Of a DNA stretch of 64,000 nt, positions 9,597 through 64,000 are shown one piece after another; positions within the stretch are counted from its first letter, which is position 1; the number at the start of each line of letters is the position of its first letter. The stretch is from Octopus sinensis (lineage: Eukaryota), in assembly GCF_006345805.1 (NCBI RefSeq), contig NC_043005.1, positions 90,520,001-90,584,000 of the forward strand, in the 5' to 3' direction. The notes below the pieces were generated by a model. That model was not told the DNA's origin, made no database searches, and was given only the letters and a program-made list of their open reading frames with translations. Position numbers and translations under genes: made by a program.

Positions 9597-9627
<31 letters not shown>

Positions 9628-9676
9628 TGTATGTATGTATGTATGTATGTATGTATGTATGTATGTATGTATGTAT
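9565..9676. repeat. (TATG)n microsatellite
   Basis: More than 20 TATG units. Confidence 0.97.
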
Positions 9677-36483: not shown

Positions 36484-38189
36484 GTAAGTAAATATTGGTC
36501 AGTTATAGTCTTTTTTTAGTCGTATATTTTTCAGTTGAAATTTCCTAACCAAGAACATTACTACATGGTTATGAGATTCAATTTGAAATTGTATGCTTTC
36601 AATTATGTACACTGTTTGTATTAGCCAGAGTGGTGTCTTCATCTTGATTATTGCTTTCGCAACATTTTGGCTGTTGTACATTCCATTCTTCTTTTGGTGT
36701 CTTGTGTCAAACTCAGTTGTTGTAGCAGAATTTCAAACCTAACTCTTTGATTCACAGAGGTACACTATTCTCATTTCACTCTCTGTGGAATGTATCAGAA
36801 TTCTGATACAACAATTAAGTTCATGATAAGACACCTGAAGAAGGGTTGGCACATAGACAGCTGAAACATAATGAAAGCAACAATCATGATGAGGTTGCCA
36901 GTCTGACTAATACATAACATAAATTCTTCATCTCAGAAATATAGAATAGTATTGTGTGGTTTTGAGGTCAATGTAGCTGAACAGCACCTTGCACAAGGGC
37001 CTTTTGCTTCACACTTGGTTTCAACAAAACTTTCATCATTTAATGTCCACTGGATTTTTCTTTTTTGCAGGGCTGGGGCTGATTTAATTCTTAACCACAT
37101 GGCTATTTCTGCATGAAAATTGGTGTATTTAATCCATTGCTTGTTTAGAAACCTACTGCCTGGTCCTTAGATATCCCTTTAGCAGATTTCACTTTTAGGC
37201 TTCGCTCTTAGTCTCTGAATTTCTTATCTTTTGAGGAAAAAAGAAAAAAAGCATAAAGAGTCGTGAGTATTGTTGTTACACCTCAAAGTCATGCAAAAAG
37301 AGTAAAAAATGATATTAAAAAGAACAAAGATCTATAACTGATGGTCATTTGGTCAATTAGCATCTGTATTAGAAATGAAACCTTTCACACTTTAACATTT
37401 AAACCAGCTGTAATTCAGCTAAAATAATTATCTTCAGAACCAACCTGATCTGGCCTCTCAACTTACTCTGCAATGTCATTCTAAAAATAAACAATCATGT
37501 CATGGAAATCTTAAAGCTACAAGTTAATGTGCATTTAAAGTAATTTAAATTTAAACTTTTAATCAAAATTCAATGTTAATTTATGTTCCAAACACCAGCT
37601 TCATAGGGGCAATGTTATTTTACTAAATTCTTCATTGAGTTCAAAATTAATTGAAACGAAGTTAGTGTGTTTCAACAGAAATATAACAAAAGTTATAACT
37701 AAGTTTATGGGCAGTTTTGTATGTAAATACAGTGAATCCTTGACGACATCATCCAATGATGGTAAGGTGCGAATTAACCCTTTTGATACCAACCCACCGG
37801 GGACTCTCCCTGGTTCTGTAATACAAACTTGTTTTAAAGTGATTTAAAGTAAAAACCTAAAATTTCATCTTCTGTTCCAAACACCAGCTTAATGTACACA
37901 ATTCTTTATTTTCAAAATTGAAATAAAGGAAGTTTCAACAGAAATATGGTAATAAAAAGGTTCAGCAGATAGCGAGAGGCATCCAATGATACGGTCACAG
38001 ATAATGGGAAACTTGGGCCTACTGCTGAGACAACTTAACTCTTCAGCATTCAGATTGCTTATTTGTTTACATTGTTTTGAATTAATCATGCATTATCCTG
38101 TATCTTTAAGATTTCAATGATGTGATTGTATAGTTTTAGGACATTGTAGAGTATGTGTGAGAGAACAGATCTGGCGGGTTTTAAGATAT

Positions 38190-38983: not shown

Positions 38984-39162
38984 AGAAACAAGATGTGTGT
39001 GGAAACTCTCTGTCTTCTATAATTATGCCACATGAAAAGAAAAATGAAAGCTGGTGTGTTATTACTGCTCATGGGAAGCTGGATGCTCCTGAATCTGGAA
39101 AAGGTTTTGAAATGTGTTTCCAAGTTTCAGTCTCTCCTCTCTCAGAAGTATTACCATTTTAA
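38984..39162 (+). CDS. PHGDH: PHGDH terminal exon 11 (QKQDVCGNSLSSIIMPHEKKNESWCVITAHGKLDAPESGKGFEMCFQVSVSPLSEVLPF*)
   Basis: cttcag acceptor in phase 1 continues exon 10. ESWCV and FEMCFQV align with vertebrate ETWHV and TEAFQFH. TAA at 39160-39162. Total CDS 1617 nt = 538 aa. Confidence 0.8.
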
Positions 39163-39205
39163 ACATTTGACATGGAATTATTTGAGAATTGTATAAACAA
39201 ATGTC

Positions 39206-39211
39206 ATTAAA
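39206..39211 (+). promoter_or_regulatory. Candidate PHGDH polyadenylation signal ATTAAA
   Basis: ATTAAA about 45 nt after the stop, followed by U/GU-rich sequence. Confidence 0.35.
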
Positions 39212-43330: not shown

Positions 43331-43366
43331 TCAGATATTTTAAAACATAAGCTTTTGTATATTTAC

Positions 43367-43509
43367 CTCTAGATTGACAGTGGCTGTCAACTTGTGCTTT
43401 GTCAAAGATCACATCAGCAGGAAGAGAGCTTCCGGCTTCCAAATTTGTTTTCGTATTGGCAACCAAAACACTTATATTCTTATACTTTTGTACACATGTT
43501 CTGCCATTT
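43367..43509 (-). CDS. Uncharacterised secreted protein exon (NGRTCVQKYKNISVLVANTKTNLEAGSSLPADVIFDKAQVDSHCQSR)
   Basis: gtctttgcag acceptor, GTAAAT donor, 143 nt (phase 2 to 1), in frame with the previous exon. Confidence 0.7.
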
Positions 43510-43616
43510 CTGCAAAGACATCAAGAGACATTAAAAGAACAATTGTCAGCATAACCATTCTGTCATTGCATGTCTTAAGCTTTTCTTTTACTATAAATGT
43601 GTGTGTGTATGTATAC

Positions 43617-43660
<44 letters not shown>

Positions 43661-44879
43661 CATAGATGAGATCCAGATATTCTCCACATAGAATACACTT
43701 AATAGTGCTCAAGAGATTTGAATTTGGGTATGGAAGTAGATATAGGGATAACCAAATTAAACAAATCAGTATATAAAGTATATTAAATACAAAATATGTA
43801 TACATATAAAAAGAGTACAAATGATATAGAAAATTAATGGTGTGGAGGAAAAGTATTACAAATCCTACAGCTGTTTCTTGGGTGGCCGGGCTCATCAATC
43901 CATAATAACATTTGTAGATTAATTGCATCTCCTTTAACATCTCAAATGTAAGATCTCTTACCTAAAGACAGAGGCTCATCTCATCCTATGTGTATGTTGG
44001 ACCTTTTATATGTATATATGTATATATATATATATATATATATACATATTTTTGTATTTCTTGCATGTCCCAAACATTGAAGAGTACCCCTGCTGCGTTG
44101 GGCAATATGATATGCTTGAGAAGACCTGTTGAGTCAAGTAAAACCAAAATCGTAGCTGTGGCCAGTGCCCCTGACTCTGGTTGCACATAAAATGCATCAT
44201 CTGAACATGGTCAATGATAATGTTTCTTGACTGGCTCCCATGCCGGTGGCACATAAAAAGCACCATCCAAACAGGGTCAATGCCAAGTCCGCCTGACTGG
44301 CTCCTGTGCCAGTGGCAAGTAAAAAGCACTATCCAAACATGATCAATGCCAGGAACACCTGAATGGCCCCATGCTGGTGGAATGTAAAAAGCATTATCTG
44401 AACATGATTGATGCCAGGCCCGCATGACTGGCTCTCATGCTAGTGGTACATAAAAAGCACCCACTACACTCTTGGAGTGTCTGGCATTAGGAAGGGCATC
44501 CAGCTGTAGAAACATTGCCAGATCAGATTAGAGCCTGGTGAAGCTACTGGCTCTCCAGACCTCATCCAACCCATGCAAGCATGGAAAATGGACGAGGATG
44601 ATGATGATGATATATATATACATGTACATATGTATGCATACATTCTTTTATTTTATATTTTTCAGCCTTCAGGCTGCAGCCATACTGGGGCACCACCATT
44701 GAAATCATCTTTTAATTGGCCAATTTTATGGGTTTGGCTTCTAGTGAAGGAGGAAGTTCGATATTGCTTCCCTCTTTTTAGTTTCCTGCCTTGATATCAG
44801 TTCATCTGGGATCTTGGAAAGAAAGAGGTCAAATTGTTTCTTGAAAGCATCTACTCTCACTCCATGGAGGTACCTCAGA

Positions 44880-46260
44880 GGATTTGGCAAGGAGTTGAAT
44901 CCCAAGCTATTGCAGTACATAGCCCTTGCCCTAGATGAGACAACTGGGACTTTTGGAACAGTGCAGTGATGTCCATTTCAAGGTCTGGTATAACTCTCAA
45001 TTCTAAAGTTTGGTGCCAGCTCCTCCAGTATCTTCCATACATGTATCACTGAGTATCTCTCCCGTCTTCGCTCTATAGAGCTCTTTTAGTCACTACCAGT
45101 AGCTCAGCTGTTCCATTGGTGCAATCTTCCTTGTGTAGTATCTCTGAACCACCTCAAGTTCTGCTATTAATCCCATAGCGTAGGGTGACCATAGTTGAGA
45201 GCAGTAGTTCAGATGGATGAGGACAAATGCCCTCCATAGGACCAGCATAGTTTCCTGGTCCCTTGTTCAGAAGGTTCTCTGAATCCAGTCAGCCATTTGC
45301 CTGCTCGCTGCTACCATCTTGGTGACATGCATGTGAAATGAGGCATTGCTGCTCATATCAATCCCAAGATTATAGACCAGATGTGATTCTAGGATTTCCA
45401 CTCCTTTTGGTCCAAAGTATCATTGTTGTGACTTCTGAGCACCAATTAGCTGGTAGTGGAGGGCTTGGAATTTGCCTGCATTAAATTGCATGCCCTCAGC
45501 CCATTTATATATTGTATCTAGGTCTTTCTGTAGAAGATTAGCATCAGAAGGTTCCTTGACTGCTTGTACTACTTTTGTATCATCGGCATAACTAGTAAGT
45601 GTGGCTATCTGTGTAACTGATGGCATGTCTGAAAGAGCCACCATGAACAGCAGTGGCTCCAATACAGTTCCTTGAGGCACTCCACTTTCTATTAATGTTT
45701 CCATGGTGAGGGCTCCATTGGTTGCTACAGCTTGGCTTCTATCTTTTAAGAAGTCATGCAACCACTCTGCAATTTTCCCAGTTATGCCGAGTCTCCGTAG
45801 TTTGTGACATTCCATCCCATGATCGAACTTATCAAAGGCCTTTGGAAAGTCAAAATATATCACATCTACATTTGAGCAATTCATTAATTGTTTCAACATC
45901 CAGTCATAGTGTTGTAAAAGCTGTGTAAGGCAGCTTCTTCCTGAGTGAAAGCCATGTTGGGTGTCAGGAAACAAGTCATTATCTCCGAGGAACACATGGG
46001 AAGTTAGAGAGGCAGGTCTATAATTCTGAGTGTCTGCTCTGCTACTTCCCTTATGGATAGGGCATATAATGCTTTCTTTTAACTTTTTGGGAAGTCTCCC
46101 TGTTGTGAAACTCTGAAAGAGAACCCCAAGTGGTCTAGTTAGAGCCCCTTTGCATTTCTTTAGGAGTATTTCTGGGAATCTGCCAGGGCCTATGGCTGAT
46201 ATCACATCAGTTTCATCTATGCTGATGCTATCAATAATTGCCATTTTGTTGTGTAGATCT
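44880..46260 (-). mobile_element. CR1-clade LINE reverse transcriptase fragment
   Basis: NYRPASLTSH, QHGFHSGRSCLTQLL, YFDFPKAFDKFDH, SGVPQGTVLEPLLF and SYADDTK in ORF 45420..46589. Confidence 0.92.
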
Positions 46261-46807
46261 GAGGAGCCAAAGAACTCGTCAGGCATAGCTACTGGAGTTG
46301 TGAAAGCACTCTTGTATTGCACATTCAGTATTTCACTGATATATGTCTGTATATATACACTGACACGCACAAATGCACATACATACACACGTGTGTGTGT
46401 GTGTGTGTTAAGTGCAATATGTTTTGTAAACACATATTGCTTGAGAAGAAGACCCATCAAGCCGAGCAGAATTGCAGTCATGGCAGATACCAGTGTTATA
46501 CAAATTGGCACCACCATGCTGGTGGCACGTAAGCACACCCTGGTGTCACGCAAATGACACCCATGCCTGTGGCATGTAAAAGCACCCATTACACTTTCAG
46601 AGTGGTTTATGTTAGGAAAGGCGTCCAGCCGTAGAAAACCATGCCAAATCAGACTGGAGTCTGGTGCAGCCTGGTCAAACTGTCCAACTCATGCCAGCAT
46701 GGACAATGGACGTTAAATGGACGCAAAAACAACAACAAAAAAATGTTTTCTTAGACATCATTAATATAAAATTGAATATTTCATATGAAACATGTATTGT
46801 TCCTTAC

Positions 46808-46921
46808 CCTTTTTTACACTTTCCTACTTTAATTTCTTGGAATGTTTTATTAATTTCTGCAAGATATTTAATCTTGCTGTCTGTGTTGTTTATCGTTTCT
46901 TTGGTGTAGACAAAGTACCTC
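46808..46921 (-). CDS. Uncharacterised secreted protein exon (RYFVYTKETINNTDSKIKYLAEINKTFQEIKVGKCKKG)
   Basis: ttctttctttctag acceptor, GTAAGG donor, 114 nt (phase 2 to 2), in frame with both neighbours. Confidence 0.75.
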
Positions 46922-48755
46922 CTAGAAAGAAAGAAAAAATTTAAACTGGATTTATTTTCATCAATGTTGGTCATGGATGAATGTATAAGTTCCATTTGAA
47001 ATAAGTTCACATTAAAATAATGATGTGAATAACATTTATGGTGTATATACAAATGGGGAAGGTGTGTGACTTAGAAGTTAGGGTGCTGCACTTATGATTA
47101 CAAAATTGTGGTTTCAATTCCCAGACTGGCGGTGATTTATGTTCTTGGGCAAAACACTTCATTTCACAATTCTCCTGTCCACTCAGATGTAAATAGGTAA
47201 CACTGCCCTACATAGTTGGGGGGGGGGGAGTGTTGGCCTGCCAGCCTACCCATTAGTAGGATGGTACTGTTTGAAAGAGCTGGCAGAAACGTTATCATGC
47301 TGGGCGAAATGCTTAGCGGTATTTTGCCTGCCATTACGTTCTGAGTTCAAATTCCACTGAGGTCAACTTTGCCTTTCATCCTTTCGGGGTCGATTAAATA
47401 AGTACCAGTTACACACTGGGGTCAATATAATCGACTTAATCCGTTTGTCTGTCCTTGTTTGTCCTCTCTGTGTTTAGCCCCTTGTGGGTAGTAAAGAAAT
47501 AGGTATTTCGTCTGCTGTTACGTTCTGAGTTCAAATTCCGGCGAGGTCAACTTTGCCTTTCATCCTTTCGGGGTCGATTAAATAAGTACCAGTTACACAC
47601 TGGGGTCGATATAATCGACTTAATCCGTTTGTCTGTTCTTGTTTGTCCCCTCTGTGTGTAGCCCCTTGTGGGCAGTAAAGGAATAGGTACTGTTTGAAAG
47701 ATACAACAATGCAAAAAAATGCAATGCAACCAGTCGTGTGTAATGACATCTGATTGTCTGATCAATGCAGTGACTTACCTGACATACATCATCATCATCA
47801 TCATCATCATTTAATGTCCGCTTTCCATGCTAGCATAAGTTGGACGATTTGACTGAGGGCTGGCAAACCAGATAGCTGCACCAGGCTCCAATCTTGATCT
47901 GGCAGAGTTTCTACAGTTGGACACCCTTCCTAACGCCAACCACTCCAAGAGTGTAGTGGGTGCTTTTTACGTGCCACCGGCATGGGGGCCACTCAGGTGG
48001 TACTAGCACACATTGACATACAAATGTAAAAGAACACTGACTGTAAAGTTTTAAGTCAGAGAAACTTCTCATACAAATATTTATTCCGATACAGGAATCA
48101 ATGAATGTTTTGTTTACCGATTTCTGTGCTGGACAAATATATCAAACTAATATTTTCTGGTTTAGCTGTGGAAGTCCAAGAAATGAAACTAAATCAAAAC
48201 ACCATTTTCTGACCATGCACCATCAACATTCTGAAGAGAGGTCTATGTTTTTTAACAAATGTCTGTTTGAGAAGTTTATATTCTTCTTATATATTTCCTT
48301 GTAACATATCTTGCATGCTAGCATGAATGGAATGCTTTGACAGGATCTGTGTCGGATCTTGTCAAGCTAAGTAAAATCACTGTGTTCCACAAATACAAGT
48401 TTGTCCTTCAAGTGCTGGTCCCACATAAAAGGCACCTGCATAGGTGCTGCATCAATGCACCCATGCCAGTGGCATGTAAAAAGCACCCATCACACTCTGT
48501 TAAGTGGTTGGCATAAGGAAGGGCATCCTGCCATAAAAACCATGCCACAACAGACAGTTGGATCTGAACAGCTCCCTGCTGGTCAGTTCCATGCCAAACT
48601 GTCCAACCCATGGAGAGCAGACATTAAACGATAAGTCGTAAATTTCAAAGCAGTGCCCCATCATGGTCACAGTCTAATGAATGAAACAAGTAAAAGATAA
48701 AAGAATATAAAAATTGAAAGTGTTGAACAATAAATGAAATGAATTTTCTACTTAC

Positions 48756-48901
48756 GTTTCACAAGGAAGATGTTCATTTCCTTCTAAATGATTAAACGCG
48801 CCAAGATATTTATTGTAGGAACTTGATGACAAACAGGATGTTGTGTCATTCCAGACATTCAAGCCAGAAATAGCTACTATCAGAATACAGATTATTTGAA
48901 C
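48756..48901 (-). CDS. Uncharacterised secreted protein exon (VQIICILIVAISGLNVWNDTTSCLSSSSYNKYLGAFNHLEGNEHLPCET)
   Basis: tttcag acceptor, GTAAGT donor, 146 nt open (phase 0 to 2). Non-repetitive sequence with a hydrophobic N-terminal stretch. Confidence 0.75.
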
Positions 48902-49499
48902 CTGAAATTCAAATAAAAATGTTTGACTATTATTATTATTATTATTATTCCCTCTCTCTCTTTCGGAGAGGCACAAGCACCTACACGCACATATACACAC
49001 ACGGCAGTAACTTCCGCCTACCGAATTCAATCACAAAGCTTCGGTCGGCTCGGGGCTATAGCAGAAGACACCTGCCCAAAGTGTCACGCAGTGGGACTGA
49101 ACCTGAAACCATGTAGCTAGGAAGCTCCCTAACCACACAGCCATGTCCACCAGCAACTCCCTTAGGCCCTTTCTTAACAGACAATGCTCTTTGGTCTTAG
49201 ATTTTGATACTGTGCCGGTGGCATGTGTAAAAGATTTGAGCGAGGTCATTGCCAGTACCACCTGACTGGCACGTAAAAAGCACCCACTACACTCTCGGAG
49301 TGGTTGGCGTTAGGAAGGGCATCCAGCTGTAGAAACTCTGCCAGGTCAAGATTGAAGCCTGGTGCTGCCATCTGGTTCACCAGCCCTCAGTCATTCGTCC
49401 AACCCATGCTAGCATGGAAAACGGACGTTAAACGACGACGATGATGATGATGATCAAAAATCTCAATTTTTGAGGATAAAAAGGATTTGTACTGATATA

Positions 49500-50260
49500 G
49501 GAGATTACTGGAAACATGCAAATGCTTTTGTACACCATTGTGTCAAATGCGGTTAGAGTGAATCATGATTAAAGGAAATTGCAAATGAATTGCTAAGATT
49601 AGCAAGGAAAGTCAAACAAAGTAAAATATTTGAAAAAACTCCTATAGTGGTTAACTGGCTCCAGAATTTCACTGGCATTTCAAAAGTGTTGCATGAAAGT
49701 TACCAGCATGTTGCAGAAAAATATCCTTGTTTCAAACAAATATTCCCTCAGCTGCCTATTGTAGCCTTTAATTAGTATAAAAATATAAGGGAACTATTAA
49801 CCACTACTTCTGACATCAAGAAAAGTAACATTGGAATTTCTGAACACCGTATCTTGAAAAAATGGCTGCAACAGAGGTAATGAGTCAAGTCAATTCCGTT
49901 AAGAATCATAGCAGAAATGTTATAGTTTATACAGAAGGTAGGGTGTGTGGAGATCCCCATTTGCTGTGCTCAGCCGAATGCACCCAACACAACTTGATTT
50001 ACATTGGTTATACAGCAGAACAATTGAACAAAAAAGATTCAGTGGGCACAAGTATGATGTCAAGCACAATATTAGTTGTTTGACAGAACTTGCTGAACAT
50101 TTTACATCAATGGCTGCAGTTTTGAAAAAGACCTGGAAGTGCATATTCCCAGAAAATATTCTGAATTTACTTTCAGTCCTCAAAATGCACGAGGAGTATT
50201 ATGTGAGTTATTAACATTACTCCCTGAAGGAATGAACAAAATGAAAAGGGAATTTCATTG
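49500..50260 (+). mobile_element. Penelope-like element, GIY-YIG endonuclease end (degraded)
   Basis: PIVAF..YKNIRELL linker, CSAECTQHNLIYIGYT and RFSGHKYD..LAEHF. Confidence 0.75.
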
Positions 50261-50619
50261 TATTTACTCCAAACTGTTTGATTAAATGTTCTTTTTCTTT
50301 TTTTCTTTTTGTTTTTGTCAGTTGTAAAATTGAAATTTGAAGACTGATGATGTCATTCCTTCAAAGTGGGAATGCAGGATCTCCTCATTCAAACTTTTGA
50401 ATTTGAATTTCTATGTATCACTTTTCATTTTGAACTCAAAAAATTGTTCAAACCAACAAATACCTATTGCAACTGCATCATGCCCTTCATATTGTCTATT
50501 TATTTTTGTGAAGAGTTATGTCAATCCTTTTAAAGTACTATTATTGTTATTATTCTTATTTTTTTTAACTAAGGTTTTGTTGGAACTCCTGGAGTTTTGC
50601 ATGCATAACGGACTTGTTG

Positions 50620-53040
50620 CCTGCAGCCTGTGTCTCAAAGTCAGCAGTTCATCAAGCAGAAATCGATAAAATAAATGCCAGATTGAAATACATACTGAGG
50701 TCACCTGGTACTGAGGTCACTGGTTCACCTTGTCCAGCACTACTAGGTCTGGCTTGTTGTACTTTAGCACCTGATCTGTTTGGATTGGGAAATCCCACAG
50801 GATTTTGCAGGTCTCTGACTCTGCCACTCTCTGTGGTTCGTGCTCATACCACATCTTGCCCCTCTCTAAACCCCCACTTTTTGTGCAATTCCCAATGTAG
50901 CACTTTTGTTACCTCATCATGTTGTCACAACTTGTTGTGGTTTTGGGCAAGTCTAGGGCATTCATTTGTGATATGGGTAGTGGTTTTGTCCAGTCTGTTA
51001 CAGATGTGGTACAGCAGAAACACTTGCTCATTCCTAAAGTTGACCCTCTAATTTGCAGCCAAAACTTGGTCTGGCACCACCAGTATGGTGCTCTCAGTCT
51101 CTTTCTTCAGTGCTCCTTTCTTCACCTAGTCCCATTTACATTTGCCAGCAACTTCAGTTGTGGCCGCATAGAATTCATTGTGTAGCCCCTTGTTGTGTAA
51201 TACTTCTTCATGTTCATTTTGTAATTCCTGCTCTGTTTTTCTATTTTCCTCTGCTTTCAATACTCCCTCATTCATAACTGACTCTAGCAAGGTTTCCTTA
51301 CTTTGGGAGAGGTGTCTCAGTAAACTTCCTACTTCGTTACATATGCAGTCTTCCACACTCATCAATCCGCTTCCTCCATCTGCTCTTTTCATCTATTGGC
51401 AATCAGTGTCTGCACATGGATGATGAGCTCCATGCATCATTAAGAGCTTTCTTGTCTTCCTGTCCAACTCCTTTAGCTTCTGCTCTGTCCACTCCAGAAT
51501 CCCAGCACTATACCAAACTACTGTGACTACATGCAAGTTTATTGCTGAAATTACAAGGTACTAATTATGTTTACGCAAAAATAACTTAATTACCCAAGTT
51601 TTAACATCATTGCCTCCAAAGGAGTCTCCTTGTGCAGCAATGTACCGGTCCCTGTGCAATTCACTCTGGGTCTTGACAACAGTGTTAAAACGATGATATT
51701 TGAGCTGCATTTTCATCTTGGGGAAGGGATGGAAGTCTGCAGCTGCTTAATCTGGCAAATAGGGCAGGTGCAGAAATGATACCATGTTGTTTTTGGTGAG
51801 AAACTCACGAGTGAAGAGAGCTCTGTGAAGAATCCAATTCTTTATGCTTCATGGATCCGGTCACTTTCATCAAATGTCCTCCCTCAAATTCTTTAAAACA
51901 GTAGAACTCTCAATCGATGGCCTGGGCCTGGGTGAGGAGGAATTCTTGATGCACAAAACCACATTTCTAGAGTTAACACTTATGGCAGCTCTTCTGGATC
52001 GCTCATCATCTTCCAGGGACATTCTTCCACTCTTGAAGAACCCATGCCACTTAAAGCATGGCATAAACCCATTGCCTCATCCCCATAAGCTTACCAAAGC
52101 ATGCTCAATGTCTCTGTAATAGACATCCCAAGTTTTAAACAAAATTTCATGCTGGCTTTTTGTTCTTGACCATGACAAAACCACAGACTACAGCAATACA
52201 CATAATCACAAAAACACAAATTTCACATCTTGGTAAGTAAACAGTGATGTCATTTGGCACCCTGCCTCATGACGGACACTGCCAGCTCTTACTCTGCATG
52301 CAACTGTGTGCTGTCATCTGTTGATATGCTACAGAACTATAGTCCAAGAGCTTTTTGATATCATTTTGTATGTTTCTGGCATTCAGCTTTGAAACCAACA
52401 ATTTTCTCACCCACTGCAGCTACATTTTCTTTCTTTCCATTCATATCGTTGTGCTTAATTCCATCTGTTCCAAGTATTCCTAGATATCTATATCTGGATT
52501 CAGGTTCAATTTCCTTCATCATTTCACCACTTGGCATACATATGCCTTCTCTCCTGACAATACTTTCCTCCTCTCATCACTATTGTAGCACATTTTGAGA
52601 GTTGAACTCCATCTTAAGAAAATCCGCACAGACTGGACTAAGCTGTCCAGTTCTGCCTCACATTTTGTTAACAACTTCAAGTCATCCATGAATAGCAGGG
52701 GGTTCAGTTTTCCCTTACCGCTTACCGGATCATACTTCAGCTTTGTCTTCTGCAGTGTTTCACTCAAGAGAATAATTCCTAGCACAAAGATCAGTGGGGG
52801 GACACTGTCCCACTGGAAGATTCCTCTCTTGATTTTTACCTCTCCTAATACCTCATTCCCTGCTGTCAATTCAGTTTTCCAACATTTCATACTGTTCCAT
52901 ATAAAGTTTCTTGTGTTTTCTGCTACCCCACATATTTCCATGGTTCTTGTTACCCAAGCACATTGTATCATACTGTATGCTGTATGATAATTAATTCATG
53001 CCATGCTCAGGTTTGTGTGTCTTCTCTTGCAGTTTCTGAT
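50620..53040 (-). mobile_element. R4/Dong-like non-LTR retrotransposon (RT, CCHC, RLE), degraded and interrupted by mariner
   Basis: KIKRGIFQWDSVPPLIFV, LLFMDDLKL, GGSGLMSVEDC, RHDEVTKVLHWELHK and KILWDFPIQTD..NKPDLVV. Confidence 0.85.
51560..52330 (-). mobile_element. Mariner transposase fragment nested in the R4-like LINE
   Basis: CFKWHGFFKSGRMSLEDDERSRR (mariner HTH-region motif). Confidence 0.8.
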
Positions 53041-53139
53041 AATTAGATTATCAATTAACAGTTGACTTTTCATTCCAAGAAGTTCACGGTGGTGAGATGG
53101 TAATCTTGATGGTAATTTTTAGTCCAGACCCCTAGACCA

Positions 53140-53270
53140 CAAGCAGAGGCAGGATGCTCATGCAGGGACCATAACAGATGCCCAGTGAGAAGCAACTGCA
53201 AAACCAAGGGAGTCATCTATGAAACTAAGGTGTATGCTGACCCTAATAGCAGCAGCAACATCAGCAGCTC
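53140..53270 (+). mobile_element. Penelope GIY-YIG N-terminal cysteine-motif fragment
   Basis: GCSCRDHNRCPVRSNCKTKGVIYETKV resembles the CxCR..CPL.G.C....VVY motif. Confidence 0.65.
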
Positions 53271-53282
53271 ACCATTATAAAA

Positions 53283-56200
53283 TGGTGACCCCGACATAGA
53301 AAAAGGATTTTCAGCAGCCGCAAAGCTTTATTGTTGCAGATGCCTCACTTGAACTACAGAATGGCAGCTTTCACTTGCATTCTCAACCAAAAATCAATGG
53401 CCCAACGTCAGGATATCTTCTCTCATTCAAGTGAACCTTTAGAATTCAGGTTCTTCGCCCTAAACTCGTATCTAGAAGAATATGCAAGGAAAATACATGG
53501 AATTCTTTCAAATAATCTCCTGTTGAAGTAATTTCTCCCATAATATTGACCATCAACGTTTGTTACCAGTAAATACACCAAATTCACCTACGGAAGAACA
53601 CTTCAAGCAAGCTGACCATCAACTTCCAGCCATCATTCCTGTCTACCACAATATCTGGGTTGCCTCACGTGGTGAAACACAACATTACCAGTTTGCCCAC
53701 CATTTGCTGATGGTTTCTTAAACAACAACAGAAAAAATACAAAAAAAAAGGAGCACACAAACATTTCTTTTTCAGCAGACTGCAACACAGGTTTGGTGAC
53801 TAAAAAAAAAAGGAAAAAAATTTTTTTTTATTACTACACACTGTACACAAAGAAAAAAAAATCAAAAATTTTGTTAAGTAAAATTTTTTTTTGCACACAC
53901 GTTACTGTTCCAGCAACACTTTGTAAGTTCTTTGGTCCTTTCTTTTCCCTCCTCTGTAAAGAAAAAATAAAATGAGTCTTCCCCATTTACCAGCATACTC
54001 TGGTGACATCACGCTTTGGTTTGCCCAGTTGGATGCCTATTTTTCGGTCCATGCGGTGCCTCTCAAACAGCAACTAAGTCTATTGTGCTGTGGGATTCCT
54101 ACCCTTCTTGCACGCCCAGTGAGAGATCTTATCACTGACCCACATTCAGACGTGACTTGTGCGTCCATTAAATCTGAGGTTCTCCAACGGAACACCCAAT
54201 CTGCCAACAGCAAATTCCAGACGCTGATGCCATCTGAGTTTCTTCGTCATTTACCTGAACTCAGCGACACATCACCAGAGGACAATTCTCTGCTCCGAAA
54301 ATTATTTTTGTCTTGGCTGCCGCCGAATGTCCAATCCATACTGGCCACAGTCAAACACTCAACTCGCCATTATATCACTACTTCTGGACCACCCGTTTTT
54401 TCGCGTCCGCAGCATCTCGCTCCTGATTGGCTCAAAAAGGCTTGTTCTGAGTTTGAATATATGCTTCAACTTAGCCTTATTCGCCCCTCCACCAGCCCTT
54501 GGGCATCTCCTCTACATTTGGCAAGGAAAGGGGTTTCAGACTTTCGCCCAGTGGGGGATTACAGACATTTAAATGCGGTCACTGTTCCCGATAGCTATCC
54601 TATAAAGAATCTCCAGAATTTATCTTCGAACTTGCATATTTGTACCATTTTTTCCAAGGTTGACCTCAACCGGGCTTATCATCAGATTCCAATGAACCCT
54701 GATGACATTCCCAAAACTGCCGTACCTCCTATTTATGAGCTTTGGTTTGCAGAATGCAACGAGTACATTCCAGAGGTTTATCAATGAAGTTGTCTGTGGA
54801 CTTGATTTTGTGCTCACTTATATCGATGATTTGCTCATAGCTAGCGACACGTATGAAAATCATCTCCAACACTTATCTCAACTTTTTCAGTGTCTTCGCA
54901 ACTAATATGTGTGAATCAACCTCGATAAGTGTGTTTTCAGGCAGTCCCCTCTGGAATTTCTGGGGCATTACATCGACTCAAATGGTATCAGACCTTTCCC
55001 TTCCAAAGTCGATGGAATTCAACACATCTCACCTCCCACTTCTCTACACCAATTGCGTCACTTTTTGGGAATCGTCAACTTCTATAGATGCTTCATTTGT
55101 GATTGTGCAGACAAGTCACTTCCATTGACTGAACTACTGCAAGCAAATACAAAAAGAGATGCTCCTATCACTCTCTGCCGAGGCATTATCTTCGTTTGAG
55201 TCAATCAAGAAGGAAATAGCTTCTGTCCCTTTGCTTGCACATCGTCTCTCTTTAACAGTTGATGCACCAGATTCTGCGGTTGGTGCTGTTTTGCAACATA
55301 CCATCAACAATCAAACTCGGCCTGTGGCATTTTTTTCTCGTCAATTAAAACCAGTTGAATGTCATTACAGTACATTTGATCATGAACTCTTACCGATCTA
55401 CCTGTCAATTCGTCCCTTTCAGCATCAACTCGAGGGCCAGGATTTTGTGATTTATACTGATCACAAGCCCCTTAAATTTACTCTGACATCCAAATTGGAC
55501 AAACACTCGCCTCGTGCTTTTTGTTACCTGGACTGCATTTCCCAGCTCACGAGTGACATTTGGCATATACCTGGAACAGAGAACATACCTGCTGATGCAC
55601 TCTCATCTCCCTGTAAGTTCACTTTCATCTCCTGCTGCAATCGATTTAACTGCCATTGCACAGGATCAGCCAGCTCTGGACACATTGGATCTGACTTTCA
55701 CCAAGCTGTCCTGTTGCAAGTTTGCCTATCTGAAAGTACAATCCTTTATGACACAGCTACTGGTTCTCCCAGACCATTTGTACCTGTGACCCCGCCCCCA
55801 GCATTCTGTTTTCAATGCCTTGCATTCACTGTCACATCCTGGCATTGCTGCCTCTGTGAAGCTTATGATGGCTCGGTTTTTCTGGCCTAATGTGTGCGAT
55901 ATGATCACCGTTTGGGCACACTCTTGTGTGAAATTCCAGCATTCTAAAGTCCACAGGCACATTCATGCTCCTCTTGGACAGTTTTCTCCATTGGAGACTC
56001 ACTTTCGCCATGTCCACATTGATCTGGTTAGACCATGGCCTGTCAGTCGTGGGTTCTCTTACATGTTGATATGCGTCGATCGTTTCTGTCATTGGCCTGA
56101 AGCCATTCCAATAGTGGACATTTCCGCTGAGTCAGTTGCTTGAGCTTTTGTTTCTAACTGGATTGCTCGCTTTGGTGTCCCAGCTAAAATAACCATTGAT

Positions 56201-56950
56201 TGTGGACACCAGTTTGAAGCTTCTTTATTTCATGAATTGTCGCAAATCCTAGGCATTCATCACATTCGTATGACCAGCTACCATCCAGCTTCCAACGGGA
56301 TGGTTGAACGCTTTCACAGGCAACTGAAAGCTGCTTCACGTGCCACTCCTGATCCACAGTCTTGGACAGAATTCCTGCCTATCGTTCTTCTTGGTTGTCG
56401 CACTGCTGTTAAAACAGACTTAGGGTTCTCCTCTGATGAACTCCTTTACGGTACCATCTTGGCACAATGTTGGTGCCAGACAATTCTTCACGTCCTGATC
56501 CAATGTCGTATGTCACCAGACTTTGCTCGTATTTCTCAAGTCTTCCACCCATGCATCTGTGTGACCAGTCTATTCCCTCTCACGTCCCACCGGACATTAA
56601 CAAATGGACTCATGTTTTTGTTCAGGATGATTCTGTCAAGGGACTTCTCATTTCTCCTTATAAGGGACCATTTTGTGTGCTATCGTGCACACCCAAAACT
56701 TTTAGTCTCAACATCAATGGTTAGGCAGAGACCGTGTCGGTCGACAGACTTAAAAGGGCACATTTTGAGGTGTCCACACCCTTCGATGACACCCCAACCA
56801 TGCCCACTTTTGATCCTTTGCAACCACATATAAATCCACCTGCACATGCACCTTTGACCACACCATCACTTACATCTCCACCTTTGTCATCACTACCTAA
56901 CACAAACAAACCCTATGCCACCAGGACAGGCCACACTATGCATTGACCCC
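53283..56950 (+). mobile_element. Gypsy/Ty3 LTR retrotransposon internal region (PBS, gag, RT, RNase H, integrase), degraded
   Basis: PBS TGGTGACCCCGAC at 53283-53295 (complementary to the tRNA-Trp 3' end). gag LWFAQLDAYF; RT SPWASPLH..GDYRHLN..YIDDLLIAS; RNase H LTVDAPDSAVGAVL; integrase SHPGIAAS, HVHIDLV and YHPASNGMVERFHRQLK. Frameshifts and stops present; no LTR pair found. Confidence 0.95.
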
Positions 56951-57134
56951 AAAAACTCACTAGAACTATTTACATCTAACTTTTTTCTTTTTTCTTCCTC
57001 TGACAGACAATCGTTTTCTCGTCTGCTGAACATTACCAATGCCTTGTCATTGAACTCTGTAAAATAATATTTTGTGCATGCTCCTTTTATATTGCTTGTG
57101 ATTGTTTTTTCTCAATTTCATATTTTATATTATA

Positions 57135-57420
57135 CTAGCAGGGTTTGTTTCAACCCTTTAGAATAGGAATTTTTGAAAAGTAAAAATTTTGCATTATGTA
57201 GCTTCTTATTCTCTTTAAGTGAACATTTTTCTGGTTGAAATACACCAAAAAATGGCGACACAGCAGTCAAAAAATGGTTAAAAAATAGGGATTTTCATAG
57301 AAAAAAAGCACGTTTTTGATGTAAATAATTTTTTGTGTTAACATGGTCCGATTTGAATTTTTTCTTCTACGGCATGAAGAGCAAGCCTTCTTCTATCATA
57401 ATCTCAATTTTGGTCAACTT
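57135..57420 (+). repeat. Non-autonomous DNA-transposon-like repeat (possibly Helitron-type)
   Basis: Starts tatactagcag, a start also seen near 34150. Classification is by recollection of similar repeats only. Confidence 0.3.
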
Positions 57421-58699
57421 GCGCTGCAGGGTTTCGGAGGAGATAGTGTTAGTTGAAGGCTACCAAACCTGCCATACACAGACAACTTCAGCTTTATATA
57501 TAGAGAGGTTTTGTACCACATCTTGTTTGTGATTGGTGACCATCTTTGCTTTCTTGTGCCTGCTCCAGTCATTCTAATTTTTGCACTGGCGTTCTCAGGA
57601 GGGAACTCCTGTAGTGTGATACAAGAAGCCAGCACCATTTTGTACGAGATCTCACCTGCGGCCATTGCCAGGTCCAAGACAAGAGCAAAATCTCACCTAC
57701 AACCATGTTTACCATGCACGAGACCACAGCGAGGCTCTCGTGGGCAACATCTATTTAAGGAGGTGTATTGATCAACACGTTCTTTTCTCTTGCATTGGCA
57801 CTCACGTTGAACAACACTAGCAGCTCACAGAAGATTCTTAACCTGCTCTAACTTTACCCGTTATCTCCAGAGGTAATGTACCTCTTGCGAACGGGGCTAA
57901 CGAACTACATGCTGACATACAGATGGTCCCCGGGGCGCAAACCCCATGAAATGAGAACCAAATAAACAACGATTGAATTGCATCTGCTTGTAAGCCTCTT
58001 CTTCTTTGAGTTCCAGAATCCTAAGACTACAAAAAACAATTGTAATGGGAGAAGGAGATACTCCACAGGTATCAGGAACCTTCTGGTCCCATTATAGAAA
58101 TTTTCTGTACGAAGGCGCAGGAGTGGCTGTGTGATAAGTAACTTGCTTACCAACCACATGCTTCCAGGTTCAGTCCCAGTGCATGGCATCTTGGGCAAGT
58201 GTCTTCTACTATAGCCTCGGGCCGACCAAAGCCTTGTAAGTGGATTTGATAGACGGAAACTGAAAGAAGCCCGTCGTATATATGTATATATATATATATA
58301 TATGTGTGTGTGTTTGTGTGTCTGTGTTTGTCCCCCTAGCATTGCTTGACAACCGATGATGGTGTGTTTATGTCCCTGTCACTTAGCGGTTCTGCAAAAA
58401 GAACCGATAGAATAAGTACTAGGTTTACAAAGAATAAGTTCCGGGGTTGATTTGCTCGACTAAAGGCGGTGCTCCAGCATGGTATCGGTTTATCAATTTT
58501 TCAGCTCATCGATTGTTTTTTTTTTTTTTTGGAGTCCTAAGTAATGCAGGCATCCAGTTTGAACAAAATATGTCAAAACTGGTAAAAGTCATGGTTGAAA
58601 ATGGGGTGTAGCCAATTTTTGTGGGAAATTCTTATCTGCCTCCCCCCAGACTAAGTAAACCTGTCTCCTAACTCCCCTTCTGGCAATCTGATACAATTC

Positions 58700-59800
58700 C
58701 CTACTATCACCGTTCTTCTAATCCTTCCATGCCTGTTTCTTTTCCCTTATGACTCTGTCAACTACACTGTTCCATCACCACATTACCTTGAGTCAAGAGG
58801 GGACTTTGCACCATCCACAGATCTGGTCAATAGCCCTCAACAGGTTGTCCTGTAGGAACCCCCAGTTGTCTTCCATATCATGTGATGCTATATCCCCCTC
58901 TATTTCGTCAAAAGATTTGAGTAATACGTTTCTAAATCTCTGTCCATTCACAGGATCCTTAAGCTTCCAGACCCTTCTTCTCCAAGCTGGTCGTCTTCTG
59001 GGCATCCATTTAGCCCTGATTCTGAAGTTGCTAACTACTAATCTATGTTGTGGGGTGCATTCTTCACCTTGGAAGGTTTGGGCATTTATTTGTAGCCATC
59101 TTTCCCCATTTCCTGGTGAGAACTTAATCAATTTGACTAGTGTGTCCACCAGATCGGTAGGTAAATAGGTGACCATAAGATCATTTGCATTGCAGAACTC
59201 CAGCAGCCTGGTTCCCTCCTCATTGTGGGAACCAAAACCATAGCCACCATGTATGCCATAGAAGTCCTCTGCACATTGTCCAACATGCCCGTTGAAGTTG
59301 CCAGCCACAAAGAGAAGGTCCCTGTCATTTGTTGAGGAGGTAGTCTGCAAGAGGGGGTCATAAAATCAATCTTTCTCTTCGTCAGTTAGCCCTGGCTGAG
59401 GGGCATAAGCTGAGATAATGGTTGCTAATCCATGTTGCAGCACTAATTTAATCTTAAGTATTCTATCACAGACTCTGACTAACTTGATTACCTTATCAAC
59501 CCATTTCCCTGCAAGAAGTATACCCATGCCCCCGGCCCCATCACTGTTCCCTACCCAGAAAATCTTATATCTATGTTCTTTGTCTGTGAGGAACCTAGCA
59601 GAACTTCCTCCCCATCTAACTTCTTGGATGCAGCACAAATCTACACATCTTCGTTCAAGCATTTGAACAATCTCACCAGACCTACCTTTCAACATGCCAG
59701 CATTAAGTGTGCCAACTCTGAGGGCGTGGAAGGTGTGGGCCCGCAAAACCCTGGGATGGAAGACAGCAGCATCATGTACCTGAAAAGAAAGCTCACATTT
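58700..59800 (-). mobile_element. RTE-clade LINE AP-endonuclease region
   Basis: RVGTLNAG, CCIQEVRW, ISAYAPQPG, VAGNFNGHVG, NEEGTRLLEFC and QHRLVV. Confidence 0.92.
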
Positions 59801-60954
59801 GGCAGAACTCATAAACATACAATAGCTTTCAGTCTGCATACACTACACCATCATTTTATGCACTACATAATTACTGCATTACATAGGAGATAAACCCTAA
59901 GTAGGAATGGGGGGAAAAATTAAGCCTTTGGAGGTGTTCATGGGAAAGACATCTGATAGAAGTCAGAGGATAGAGACTTCTGGTATAGGTGGTGGGGTGG
60001 GAAGGGAGGGTGCACTGTGAAACGGCAAAAACTCAGGCTGACAATATGAAAGAATAGTAATAATAATAATGAGATAGAACTGGGCATTTGCATTCTTAGC
60101 TAGAGCTATAACCAAAAGTTTTCGGTCAGCCAAGGTGTGACAAAATTAGATAAATGAATGAATAAAATGACAATAATAAATGAGTGAAAGAGAGGAAGAA
60201 GGGAGAAAGAGGGGGTTGAGTGAAGGGACCTTAAGTTTTTTCTCAAAACATATTGGCATGGAAGACAAAACTGTGTTTACATAGATAGATAATGAAATAT
60301 ATAGCTAATGAAATTAAATAATAAAGTAATTATAATTTACATTGAAAAAGAGGTTTTAGATGTGTGCTAAGTTGGAAAACAAAGTTGTTTATCTGAACAC
60401 CTTGATTTCTACTCCATGTGGTGAGGTATTAAAATACGAGGTAGAAGAATCTGAATGAGCTAGTTTGTATAGGGTGGAGTGGGGTGTTGGGAGAAGCAAG
60501 TGGTTAATGAAACTGAGAGAGAAAATGAAGAAGAAGAGAGAGACCAGAGTTAAGCTGGTTGAAGACAGAACATGAGGAGATGGAATTTTAGAATTTAGGG
60601 TAACATAACTGAATGAATAGGTTTAACATTGCTGCTGCCAGTGTGAAAAAAAAAATAATATATATATATATCATCATTTAAAGTCCGTTGTCCATGCTGG
60701 CATGGGTTTGACGGTTTGACCAGGGCTAGTAAGCTGGAAGGCTGCACCAGACTCCAGTCTGATTTGGCAAGGTTTCTACAGCTGGATGCCTTTCCTAGCG
60801 CCAACCACTCCGAGTGTGTAATGGGTGCTTTTATGTGCCACTGGTATGGGTGCCATTTGTGTGACACCGGTACCTTCCATGACTGCAATTTTGCTCAGTT
60901 TGATGGATCTTCTTCTCAAGCATGACATAATGCCAAAGGTCTCAGTCATTGCCT

Positions 60955-61100
60955 CCATGAGGCCCAACACTCAAAAGAAATGCAGCCACTTTGCCTCCTT
61001 GGGGCCCAGTGCTCAAAAGGAACTCAACCACTTTGCGTCCGTGAGGCCCAGTGCTTGAAAGGAACTCAGCCACTTTGCCTCTATGAGGTCCGATACTTGA
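60955..61100. repeat. About 42-bp tandem repeat (3-4 units) inside a family-A SINE; related units at 38560-38660 in reverse orientation
   Basis: gaggccca..aaaggaactcagccactttgcctc repeated. Confidence 0.8.
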
Positions 61101-61319
61101 ATGGTGCTCTGTACATACCACTAGCATGGTTGCCAGTTACCTGGTACCAGCATCAGCCATGACTGTGATTTCACTTGGCTTGATGGGTCTTCTCAAGCGC
61201 CGTGTACCGCCAAAGGTCTCGGTCACTAGTCATTGCCTCTGTGAGGCCCAAAGCTTGAAGATCATGCTTCACCACTTCATCCCATGTCTTCCTGCATCTG
61301 CCTCAACCACAAGCTCCCT

Positions 61320-61640
61320 CTAGGAGCAGAAATCCTAAAAACACGTACAGTGTATGATCTTGGGATTCATTTGAGCAACATTGCATCAATGGAACAGCTG
61401 AGCTACTGGGACTCTACTCCCTAGAGTGAAGATGGGAGAAAACTGCAACTTTACTCCCTGGAGCAAAGGCATGAGACATATGCAATTATCTACATATGGA
61501 AAACTCTAGAGGGGCTAGATCCTAATTTTGGCATTGAGTGTTATACAAATGCCAGAACATTCCACCATTGTATTGTACCAAAGATACCATCGACTCCATC
61601 TAGATGCAGGACCAGGTACTGCAATAGTCTAGGGTAGGTA
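61320..61640 (+). mobile_element. CR1-clade LINE C-terminal fragment
   Basis: DLGIHLS, LYSLE and YAIIYIWKTLEGLDPNFG, the same family as the segment at 44880-45400. Confidence 0.6.
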
Positions 61641-62131
61641 ATCCAGATAGACAAGCACACACACACACACACACAAAAGAAGACTGAAACACATGACCAT
61701 ATACACACACAAGGAGATAGAAGTACACACACAAACACACAAACTCATGGATATACAGAATACACATATATAAAAACGTACACACATACATATATATATG
61801 CATACACACACACATACACACATACATACACACATGCATACATACATACACACATACATACATATGTGTATACACATGCACACTTATGCACACACATGTG
61901 CACAAACAAACAAACAAAAAGAATGCAGCTCTGTAGAGGTTGCAAGACAACGAAATTTTAGAAAAAATAAATAAGTAAATGGGTGGAAATTAATTCAGTG
62001 AATGTGTTAATTAATAAGGCATTAAAAGAGAACGACTCTCCTCAGACACAATACTATATGCGTGTGTGTGTGATTTGTAGAAAACACAAATCCGGAGAGG
62101 AAGCACCATCTAAGCTGTAGAGTGGTGTATA

Positions 62132-62339
62132 TTTTAATGGGGAAGGCCAGTTTATGGAATTACCCTGAGTTTTCCATCCATAAAGGGTCTAGCTTTACGG
62201 CATATTGTCAGATCCCAAAACCTGTTTTGAAGAGGTCTTAGGTCAACAGGTTTTGGGGTCTGACGATATGCCATAACGCTAAACCCTTTATGTTCAGGAA
62301 ACTCAGGGTAATCCCATAAACTGGCCTTCCCCATTAAAA
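62132..62339. repeat. Foldback palindrome with 95-bp arms and an 18-nt spacer
   Basis: 62132-62226 is the reverse complement of 62245-62339 with about 11 mismatches by hand count. Confidence 0.92.
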
Positions 62340-62504
62340 CACACACACACATATATATATTTTCATATGTATATATATTTATATATGAACATATATATAT
62401 GTATATATATATATTTATATATGCATATATATGAATATAAATTTTATTTGTTAGGGAATAAAAATTCCGGCATAACAGAGGTTCAAATTATTCTCAATGA
62501 AGAA

Positions 62505-62820
62505 ATATATTTTAATTTAGAGATAGTAGACCCCTACATCTCACCATATAAAAAAGAATTTTTATTTTAAATACCTACTGTTTTATTACTTGGCAACACG
62601 TGTTTCATGAGGTACATCCTCCGGTTACTAAACCACTCCGTGTTTTCCTGGGACCCTTCTTAAAATGTAACCCAAATCATCAGGCCCTTATATCACTTTA
62701 TCATGAGGATGTACCTCATGAAACACGTGTTGCCAAGTAATAAAACAGTAGGTATTTAAAATAAAAATTCATTTTATATGGTGAGATGTAGGGGTCTACT
62801 ATCTCTAAATTAAAATATAT
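62505..62820. repeat. Near-perfect inverted repeat with about 116-bp arms and an 83-bp spacer (Penelope-like inverted terminus)
   Basis: 62505-62621 is the reverse complement of 62705-62820 with about 2 differences. Flanked by AT/TA-rich sequence. Confidence 0.92.
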
Positions 62821-62823
62821 ATG

Positions 62824-62857
<34 letters not shown>

Positions 62858-63020
62858 ATATATATATATTAAATTAGAGATAAAACCACTATTAAGCAAA
62901 TCAAACAGTGAAAATCATAAACCAATACATAGAAATAAAATTAATTAATAAAATATAAAATTCAAAATTTAAATTTAAAGTTAAAATTTTTAAAATTATT
63001 TAAATAATTTATACCTATAA

Positions 63021-63067
<47 letters not shown>

Positions 63068-63516
63068 ATATATTTTATTATTATTATTATTATTATTATT
63101 TTGTATGTATGTATGTATGTATAGTGAGAAATTACAAAAAAAGCAAAAAACGAAGACAGGTGTGTAAACAACAAACAGATGTATTAGTTTAATGCTCAGG
63201 AAGTGAGAAAAATCTTTTACATTTCAAGCCTACGCTCTTCCACAGAAAGGAACACAGAAATAAACAGGGATAGAAAACAGAAAAAGGTACAGTGGCAACA
63301 TATATATATATATAAAATTAAATGGGTGGCTTAGTAATTTTGCCTTTATATATAATATAATATAATATACACATGTAATAAAATAGGATTTTTTCTCAGC
63401 AAGTACAAAAAATTTATTAAAATGAAATTGAAACTCAATAAAGAGTTGCTTTTTAAAACCTTTAGAAACATTCTCTTATTTTAGGGTGAAAAGCAAGGAG
63501 CATACCATTAACTTAC

Positions 63517-63531
63517 CATTAACAAGGCCAT
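63517..63531 (-). CDS. Uncharacterised secreted protein, first coding exon (MALLM)
   Basis: Minus strand reads agcATGG (good Kozak context), ATG GCC TTG TTA ATG, then a perfect GTAAGT donor (phase 0). An upstream acceptor (T-tract, ctcag) at 63608 implies a 5' UTR part from 63607. Joining to 48901 completes a signal peptide. Confidence 0.55.
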
Positions 63532-64000
63532 GCTATCTGGGGGCCACGTATCTTGATATTCTTTCGTTTCTTCAATATATGTGTAAGTGTGTGAAGTTTG
63601 TAATAAACTGAGATGCAAAAAAAAAATGCATCAAATAAGTAGAAGATTTGAAGTAGGGTTTTTTTTTTTTTGCTAAATATAAATTTAATTTACCAGAAAA
63701 CAGGATAACAGTTCTAATAATTAAACCAATCCTTTTGAATTTAGTTGGATGTGAAGTGATTATGTATTTTCCATTCATCGTTGATTCTCATGCATTCACA
63801 CAAACAGGATTTTGTACTATAATAATTCTTTTGTTTTACAATTGACGCTTGTATGGTTGGTATGGTTAAAAAGTTCACTTTCCAACTGTGTGATTATTGG
63901 AACCCCCTCCCTCACTGCATGCCACTTTGGGCAGTTGTCTTCTACTATAGCCCTGGGCAGGCTTGGTTTTGAGTCCCCACTTATTCATCATAGTCCTCTT

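Follow-up and report, generated by a model that had tools for sequence, protein, structure and literature searches.

An uncharacterised, probably secreted Octopus protein whose coding exons have diverged faster than the DNA around them

The window analysed here is a stretch of 64,000 nucleotides (nt) of the Octopus sinensis genome, CM016867.1:90,520,001-90,584,000 of assembly GCA_006345805.1. On its minus strand lies a genuine spliced protein-coding gene, LOC115215658, whose five coding exons extend over 26.3 kb (37208-63531) and are interleaved with those of the plus-strand gene PHGDH. Between O. sinensis and Octopus bimaculoides, the coding sequence alone has diverged at about twice the rate of the non-coding DNA around it, and at several times the rate seen at PHGDH synonymous sites. 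An initial annotation, made from the letters alone, had described the locus as an unrecognised gene for a secreted, glycosylated protein. The word unrecognised was wrong, because both the exact protein (XP_029640776.1) and its O. bimaculoides ortholog (XP_052827024.1) were already annotated. In a search of a large protein collection, the peptide encoded by the four exons first proposed agreed at all 139 residues with XP_029640776.1 of RefSeq. That entry, also UniRef100_A0A6P7SS58, has 145 amino acids (aa) and is named "uncharacterized protein LOC115215658 [Octopus sinensis]". Furthermore, window positions 37208-63531 agreed base for base with the recorded LOC115215658 interval on contig CM016867.1. 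The locus is that RefSeq gene, the gene models show no difference, and the model itself adds nothing new to what RefSeq already holds. The entries of XP_029640776.1 and XP_052827024.1 gave no name and no domain, and no papers were found under their LOC, XP and UniProt identifiers.

The coordinates of the exons and associated features are collected in Table 1. The four exons proposed in the initial annotation (coding exons 1 to 4) were all found on reading the sequence, with GT/AG borders and at the coordinates given for them. Joined in frame, they comprised 418 nt with end phases of 0, 2, 2 and 1 and yielded the 139-residue peptide. Each of the internal exons 2 to 4 was preceded by a pyrimidine-rich tract ending in ag and followed by gtaag or gtaaa. 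The terminal exon, which had not been placed before, is coding exon 5. Its acceptor reads ...ttttcctcaaaag (upstream stretch ctttttttcttttttcctcaaaag, ...ctcaaaag), its leading AT completes the split codon G/AT, and the five pieces together translate exactly to the 145-aa RefSeq protein. Read-through past the exon 4 donor was considered as an alternative C-terminus and was ruled out, because an insertion or deletion (indel) of 4 nt, located 50 nt inside the intron, puts the two species in different frames. The two ATTAAA motifs beyond the stop codon may be the polyadenylation signals of a short 3′ untranslated region. The join of the 15-nt first exon over 14.6 kb had been regarded as the weakest of the chain. 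Exon 1 is part of model XP_029640776.1, both annotated models back the join, and the ATG and the GTAAGT donor were kept in O. bimaculoides. The RefSeq model was presumably built on spliced reads, because a first exon so short and so distant, and a 20-nt last exon inside another gene, could hardly be reached ab initio. The exon chain is beyond chance in view of the full identity with RefSeq, the matching gene interval and the syntenic five-exon structure in O. bimaculoides.

Table 1. Coordinates (window positions) of LOC115215658 and of associated features
Feature	Position	Strand	Remarks
Coding exon 1	63517..63531	-	15 nt; ATGGCCTTGTTAATG = ATG GCC TTG TTA ATG (M-A-L-L-M), signal-like start; then GTAAGT donor
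Intron 1	48902..63516	-	14.6 kb; counterpart in O. bimaculoides 1.25 kb
Coding exon 2	48756..48901	-	146 nt, codons 6-54; Cys28, Cys52
Coding exon 3	46808..46921	-	114 nt, codons 55-92; block KIKYLAEINKTFQ.IKVG.C, N78-K-T sequon, Cys89
Coding exon 4	43367..43509	-	143 nt, codons 93-139 and first base of codon 140; Cys97, Cys136
Coding exon 5	37208..37227	-	20 nt; AT AAG AAA TTC AGA GAC TAA (D-K-K-F-R-D-stop)
Two ATTAAA motifs	37083..37133 (37128-37133 and 37083-37088)	-	75 and 120 nt past the stop codon; read from the sequence
PHGDH last coding exon	38984..39162	+	within the last intron of LOC115215658 (37228-43366)

The syntenic ortholog in O. bimaculoides, LOC128248878 (XP_052827024.1, "uncharacterized protein"), has 141 aa, shares 73% identity with the O. 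sinensis protein and lies between Vta1 and the PHGDH homolog. It possesses the same five coding exons, and every donor and acceptor is kept. The two genes differ by a 3-nt deletion in exon 2, by an exon 3 donor lying 3 nt further upstream with the frame kept, and by a stop codon placed two codons earlier in O. bimaculoides. The frame was intact in that species, free of the stops and frameshifts that the initial annotation had named as evidence against a gene. At the protein level, the N-terminus MxLLMVQIICILI...SG/LN (the slash marks the proposed cleavage point) was conserved in both species, together with the long blocks SYNKYLG.FNHLEGNE and KIKYLAEINKTFQ.IKVG.C. Moreover, all five cysteines of the mature region (28, 52, 89, 97 and 136) were conserved, and the O. 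bimaculoides protein has a sixth.

The divergence between the two species was concentrated in the exons. The coding exons were 84.6% identical, compared with 93.0% for 6.5 kb of non-coding DNA in eight colinear blocks (Fisher p = 9e-9). Single internal exons were 81-87% identical, whereas the 100 nt of intron on each side showed 87.5-95.8% and the 300 nt past the stop codon 95.0%. For exon 2, the amino-acid identity was 76% (tblastn) and the nucleotide identity 87.4%, while the 100 nt of intron bordering it reached 95-96%. Exon 4 was the most divergent, with 81.1% nucleotide identity against 88-91% in the adjoining intron. Directly after it, the first 36 nt of intron 4 (43331-43366, minus strand) were identical in both species, which may be the mark of a splicing element or else a coincidence (probability about 7%, given the background identity of 93%). 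In addition, the codons of the signal peptide differed at about 9% of bases and those of the mature region at about 16.5%.

Both classes of coding site contributed to the divergence. Replacement differences amounted to 13.4% per site, compared with 7.0% in non-coding DNA (p = 4e-5), and silent differences amounted to 24.5% per site compared with the same 7.0% (p = 1e-6). Replacements were rarer per site than silent changes (odds ratio of non-synonymous versus synonymous differences 0.49, p = 0.027). Four methods gave non-synonymous substitutions per site (dN) of 0.134-0.150, synonymous substitutions per site (dS) of 0.244-0.315 and dN/dS of 0.47-0.55. A dN/dS across cephalopods had been proposed in the initial annotation, and the range given here was obtained for the two Octopus species only. 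For 338 codons of PHGDH in the same alignment, dS was 0.059 and dN 0.005. The open frame was also examined against chance. The probability of no stop after 66 random substitutions was 0.08. Both length differences in the coding sequence were of 3 nt, whereas the nearby non-coding DNA showed 8.4 indel events per kb, 69% of which were not multiples of 3. From this local rate about 2.4 frame-breaking indels were expected, and the joint chance with the absent stops was about 0.007.

The N-terminus had been described as signal-peptide-like, and this description held in both species, as did that of conserved cysteines. Cleavable signal peptides generally open with an n-region of few residues, continue with an uncharged hydrophobic core some 7-15 residues long, and have small residues at positions -1 and -3 before the cleavage point. 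In both octopus proteins, residues 2-17 form a hydrophobic uncharged core (mean Kyte-Doolittle 2.9-3.1), followed by S-G/L-N. The core is completed by exon 2 (48863-48901), and the proposed cleavage site lies after S17-G18. Position -1 is occupied by G and position -3 by I or L, and S-G/L is conserved. The core of 16 residues is long and the n-region contains no basic residue; the N-terminus may also be a signal anchor. We infer that residues 1-18 are a cleavable signal peptide, cut after Gly18. The mature protein would then have 127 aa, a computed mass of 14.4 kDa and a computed isoelectric point of 8.9 (about 9). It is predicted to be exported and to contain two disulfides, with one spare cysteine that could join two chains.

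The four sequons, the five cysteines of the mature region and the KK site listed in the initial annotation were all present in the O. sinensis protein. Their conservation was different. The O. bimaculoides protein contains two sequons, one of them its own (N-Q-T), and only N78-K-T is common to both species. The description of the protein as glycosylated is therefore left with one conserved sequon (N78, NKT) and, as the other three were not conserved, has little basis. Likewise, the K90-K91 pair of O. sinensis is K-I in O. bimaculoides and no other dibasic pair was conserved, so that processing at KK has little basis.

The initial annotation could not assign the protein to a family, and the searches with Pfam, HMMER, the PDB, AlphaFold and Foldseek gave none either. 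In the Pfam scan of both orthologs nothing reached the cut-off, and only sub-threshold matches to Spaetzle, ANAPC16 and SUR7 appeared. The best match in both was PF16077 Spaetzle, with E-values of 0.046 and 0.0065 and scores of 14.8 and 17.5 bits, where 27 bits are required. It placed residues of about 50-99 on profile positions 2-51, with Cys52, Cys89 and Cys97 on the first three knot cysteines. When the sequence was shuffled ten times with its cysteines fixed, no shuffle matched Spaetzle, and six matched unrelated families at E 0.02-0.13. The Spaetzle E-values are thus at the edge of noise. With hhalign, the profile of the two sequences gave a probability of 0.08% (E 0.62) against a single Drosophila Spaetzle sequence. 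In the PDB sequence search, the single protein gave two chance matches at E about 0.5 and the two-sequence profile gave none. AlphaFold2, run with two-sequence alignments, gave no confident fold (mean predicted local distance difference test, pLDDT, 35.0 for the full-length protein and 39.9 for the mature part), and Foldseek of the better model against the PDB found no match at E <= 0.001.

An exhaustive HMMER profile search of 1.84 billion representatives returned only the ortholog and an entry P0003. The latter was ruled out as a homolog, because its 1,437 aa are the translation of a tandem repeat and its score is a sum over five stretches. A control search with the C-terminal domain of Drosophila Spaetzle returned only two D. 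melanogaster isoform clusters, indicating that the protein collection is sparse for animal proteomes. Within such a collection, relatives were found only in Octopus, and the earlier suggestion of a lineage-restricted secreted factor is a fair reading. Octopus carries an expansion of IL-17. An IL-17-like cytokine was rejected as a candidate, as the C-terminal C-x-C is absent and no IL17 match was listed by Pfam, although no search aimed at it was made.

The neighbouring PHGDH protein has 538 aa with the domains PF00389 and PF02826, and its coding range ends at window position 39162. Its exon peptides are readable in the list of open reading frames (ORFs) and were 98-100% conserved in O. bimaculoides. 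For its last intron, about 36484-38983, the only long open join was that of the donor GTAAGT following position 36483 with the acceptor cag preceding 38984. Exon 5 of LOC115215658 lies antisense within this intron. In the interval 36484-43366, each gene has its last coding exon in the last intron of the other, and the coding ranges have 1,955 bp in common. The same interleaving was found in O. bimaculoides (L001 21982-24287). The initial annotation had called the two genes convergent, which is correct for the orientation of the minus-strand gene but falls short of the arrangement, because the coding ranges interleave. In another intron-borne stretch of PHGDH (32708-33094, plus strand), a 128-aa ORF matched the integrase zinc-binding domain PF17921 (E 1.2e-8) and is a retroelement fragment.

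The length of intron 1 was examined by comparison with O. bimaculoides. The colinear blocks broke at 48949 and resumed at 63347, and the extra DNA was mostly decayed mobile-element sequence. As the intron of O. bimaculoides measures 1.25 kb, that of O. sinensis is a normal intron swollen by decayed elements. On the plus strand at 53972-56143, broken ORFs matched DUF7041, RVT_1, RT_RNaseH and Integrase_H2C2 and were absent from the O. bimaculoides intron. This run marks a decayed retroelement of the long terminal repeat (LTR) type, antisense to LOC115215658. No LTR-like long direct repeats were found flanking the retroelement remnants of intron 1. On the minus strand at 52519-52971 and 58793-59839, ORFs of 150-185 aa gave the impression of endonuclease/reverse-transcriptase fragments of long interspersed nuclear elements, none of them at Pfam E <= 0.001.

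Other repeats were spread over the window. A repeat of about 190 bp resembling a short interspersed nuclear element (SINE) gave 25 blastn matches in the 64 kb, one of them the query copy, on both strands and with 68-92% identity to the query copy. Examples lie at 2412-2597, 11949-12134, 16228-16413, 19245-19429, 27393-27578, 41101-41300, 47795-47982 and 49267-49447, and the repeat was also frequent at the O. bimaculoides locus. An ARAGORN tRNA scan and an Rfam search at gathering thresholds over the window gave nothing, including in the SINE-like repeat. In addition, long AT-rich microsatellites with TATA/TACA-type units at 1500-2800, 7600-7850 and 9450-9780 gave rise to ORFs as long as 244 aa that read "YIYIYI" and are spurious.

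Neither the drift of a non-coding exon nor relaxed constraint can exceed the background rate, so that selection for change in the translated sequence, or a mutational or conversion process limited to the exons, remains as the cause of the divergence. Compared with external yardsticks, the replacement rate was high, dN of 0.15 being above both the dS of PHGDH (0.059) and the non-coding divergence (0.07). LOC115215658, itself uncharacterised, belongs to a well-known class of secreted proteins that evolve fast and are restricted to one taxon. It is likely that the gene encodes a genuine taxon-restricted, probably secreted protein under diversifying selection, with a role in recognition or conflict (reproduction, immunity or saliva). 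The small, putatively disulfide-bonded protein, once exported, would act outside the cell and would bind a partner that itself keeps changing. Such a partner would drive repeated amino-acid replacement, that is, diversifying selection. As to the arena, our guess is that reproduction or chemical communication and immunity stand about level, with saliva or venom in third place. A venom family is less likely, because venom gene families do not typically present a single copy in conserved synteny, as this gene does.

Several points weigh against diversifying selection on a secreted recognition protein. The evolutionary comparison covers only two species, O. sinensis and O. bimaculoides, and 141 codons. 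By the gene's own yardstick dN/dS is below 1, and the case for positive selection leans on introns and PHGDH silent sites as neutral. Moreover, the gene's own silent sites evolved about five times faster than the neutral yardstick, for which simple positive selection has no explanation. The low pLDDT would fit an orphan modelled from a two-sequence alignment and also a protein without a stable fold. The restriction to Octopus is also a weak statement, meaning that relatives were not detected elsewhere in an animal-sparse collection. The raised silent rate may reflect alleles of ancient origin kept in balance, conversion by a copy that escaped detection, or a mutational effect confined to the locus. 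Conversion and the mutational effect are disfavoured, and balanced alleles in part, by how abruptly divergence changes at the exon borders and by the conservation of the stretch that follows the stop codon.

Under long-term balancing selection, of the sort seen at mating-recognition loci and at loci resembling the major histocompatibility complex, old divergent exon alleles would have been kept in populations while recombination homogenised the introns, and the two reference genomes would have sampled different lineages, the protein still being of a secreted recognition type. This explains why silent and replacement sites were raised together (silent differences 24.5% against 7.0%; dS 0.244-0.315) while the introns stayed at the local background. 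However, the change at the exon borders is very sharp, with 36 identical bases after exon 4, and linked neutral sites within tens of bases should share the old coalescence; we consider this explanation rather unlikely. A mutational origin would likewise raise silent and replacement sites with sharp exon borders, either through repeated gene conversion, with a diverged paralog or a processed copy that lacks annotation as the donor for the exons, or through an exon-targeted mutator as once proposed for cone-snail toxin genes. It is very unlikely, as no paralog was found among the annotated proteins of either species or in the window, and the probable untranslated part of the last exon was 95% conserved, which makes a process acting on the whole mRNA unlikely. 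A slightly smaller chance is given to a frame that is not translated, in which case the PHGDH 3′ region would give rise to a spliced RNA, non-coding or antisense, whose frame is open by chance, and the RefSeq protein would be an artefact of annotation. The lack of homologs found outside Octopus, of a known domain and of a confident fold would be expected of such an RNA; its exons are less conserved than the introns, its last exon is antisense inside PHGDH, and a frame left open after 66 random substitutions is not very rare. Nevertheless, an exon of that kind should drift at the background of about 7%, not 15%, and replacements were significantly rarer per site than silent changes. Both indels preserved the frame where about 2.4 frame-breaking events were expected, with the joint chance given above, and the five mature cysteines and the hydrophobic N-terminus were kept.

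No greater probability is attached to a very divergent Spaetzle or neurotrophin cystine-knot cytokine, a dimeric ligand of a Toll-type receptor. Spaetzle was the best Pfam match in both orthologs, the alignment of Cys52, Cys89 and Cys97 is that of knot cysteines, and none of the cysteine-fixed shuffles reproduced it. Moreover, an odd cysteine number would permit a covalent dimer, and the low-confidence AlphaFold models showed long strands in the C-terminal half. The scores were nevertheless far under the cut-off, unrelated families reached similar E-values with the shuffles, and neither hhalign nor Foldseek gave support. The knot of the nerve growth factor type, a beta-hairpin fold, has six cysteines including a C-terminal C-x-C. 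The domain here contains only Cys52, Cys89, Cys97 and Cys136 and is missing the C-x-C, so that a three-disulfide knot is impossible, and there is no pro-domain. A further reading, in which the protein is a prohormone or the precursor of a neuropeptide and is cleaved at KK, would agree with the signal-like N-terminus and with K90-K91 of O. sinensis. It is hardly credible, because the pair is K-I in O. bimaculoides, no dibasic or amidation motif was conserved, and the conserved stretches, in contrast to short peptides in repeated array, are long and include cysteines.

The favoured reading remains that of a secreted recognition protein under diversifying selection. An extended form of it is tentative and rather less likely to be right than wrong: LOC115215658 would be the founder of a family confined to octopods, made up of extracellular recognition proteins that are stabilised by disulfides and have a new fold. 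The coding exons of the gene, including their silent sites, would have been driven apart between species, either in an arms race or through balanced alleles of ancient date. If this were true, the gene would be a cephalopod counterpart of abalone lysin or of a recognition locus like that of the major histocompatibility complex. If further species show ordinary rates, it is merely another orphan secreted protein. Molecules of fertilisation, pheromone signalling and immune recognition are poorly known in cephalopods, and a gene with such a signature is a cheap and well-defined candidate. Furthermore, population data would separate balancing selection, conversion and a local mutational effect as sources of the raised silent divergence with its sharp exon borders.

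Compared with known systems, the octopus protein resembles Spaetzle and the neurotrophins (PF16077), the one family singled out by any of the tools, in its small size and probable secretion, in its odd cysteine count and in a weak match from Cys52 to Cys97 with the first half of the domain. It differs in having no second half of the knot, the C-x-C included, and the match is at noise level. The precursors of cone-snail toxins and of snake-venom phospholipase A2 show accelerated evolution of the mature region with a conserved signal region, and their introns are better conserved than their exons. They belong to multigene families expressed in venom glands. The octopus gene is similar in that its signal codons differed less than its mature region (9% against 16.5% of bases), but it is single-copy in conserved synteny, with no paralog among the annotated proteins or in the window. 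The nearest parallel in behaviour is abalone sperm lysin, which is helical and without cysteines. The dN/dS of lysin is above 1, whereas that of the octopus gene is about 0.5, because the silent sites of the latter were raised too. Lysin is secreted, of small size and from a mollusc, and its gene has five exons (PMC2704960); according to the title of Metz et al. (1998), replacement substitutions in lysin exceed intron substitutions (PMC27954). There is no sequence similarity between lysin and the octopus protein, and homology is not claimed. The likeness to lysin and the 18-kDa acrosomal protein is one of behaviour only: the octopus gene has five exons, and its replacement divergence (13.4%) was above that of the non-coding DNA (7.0%).

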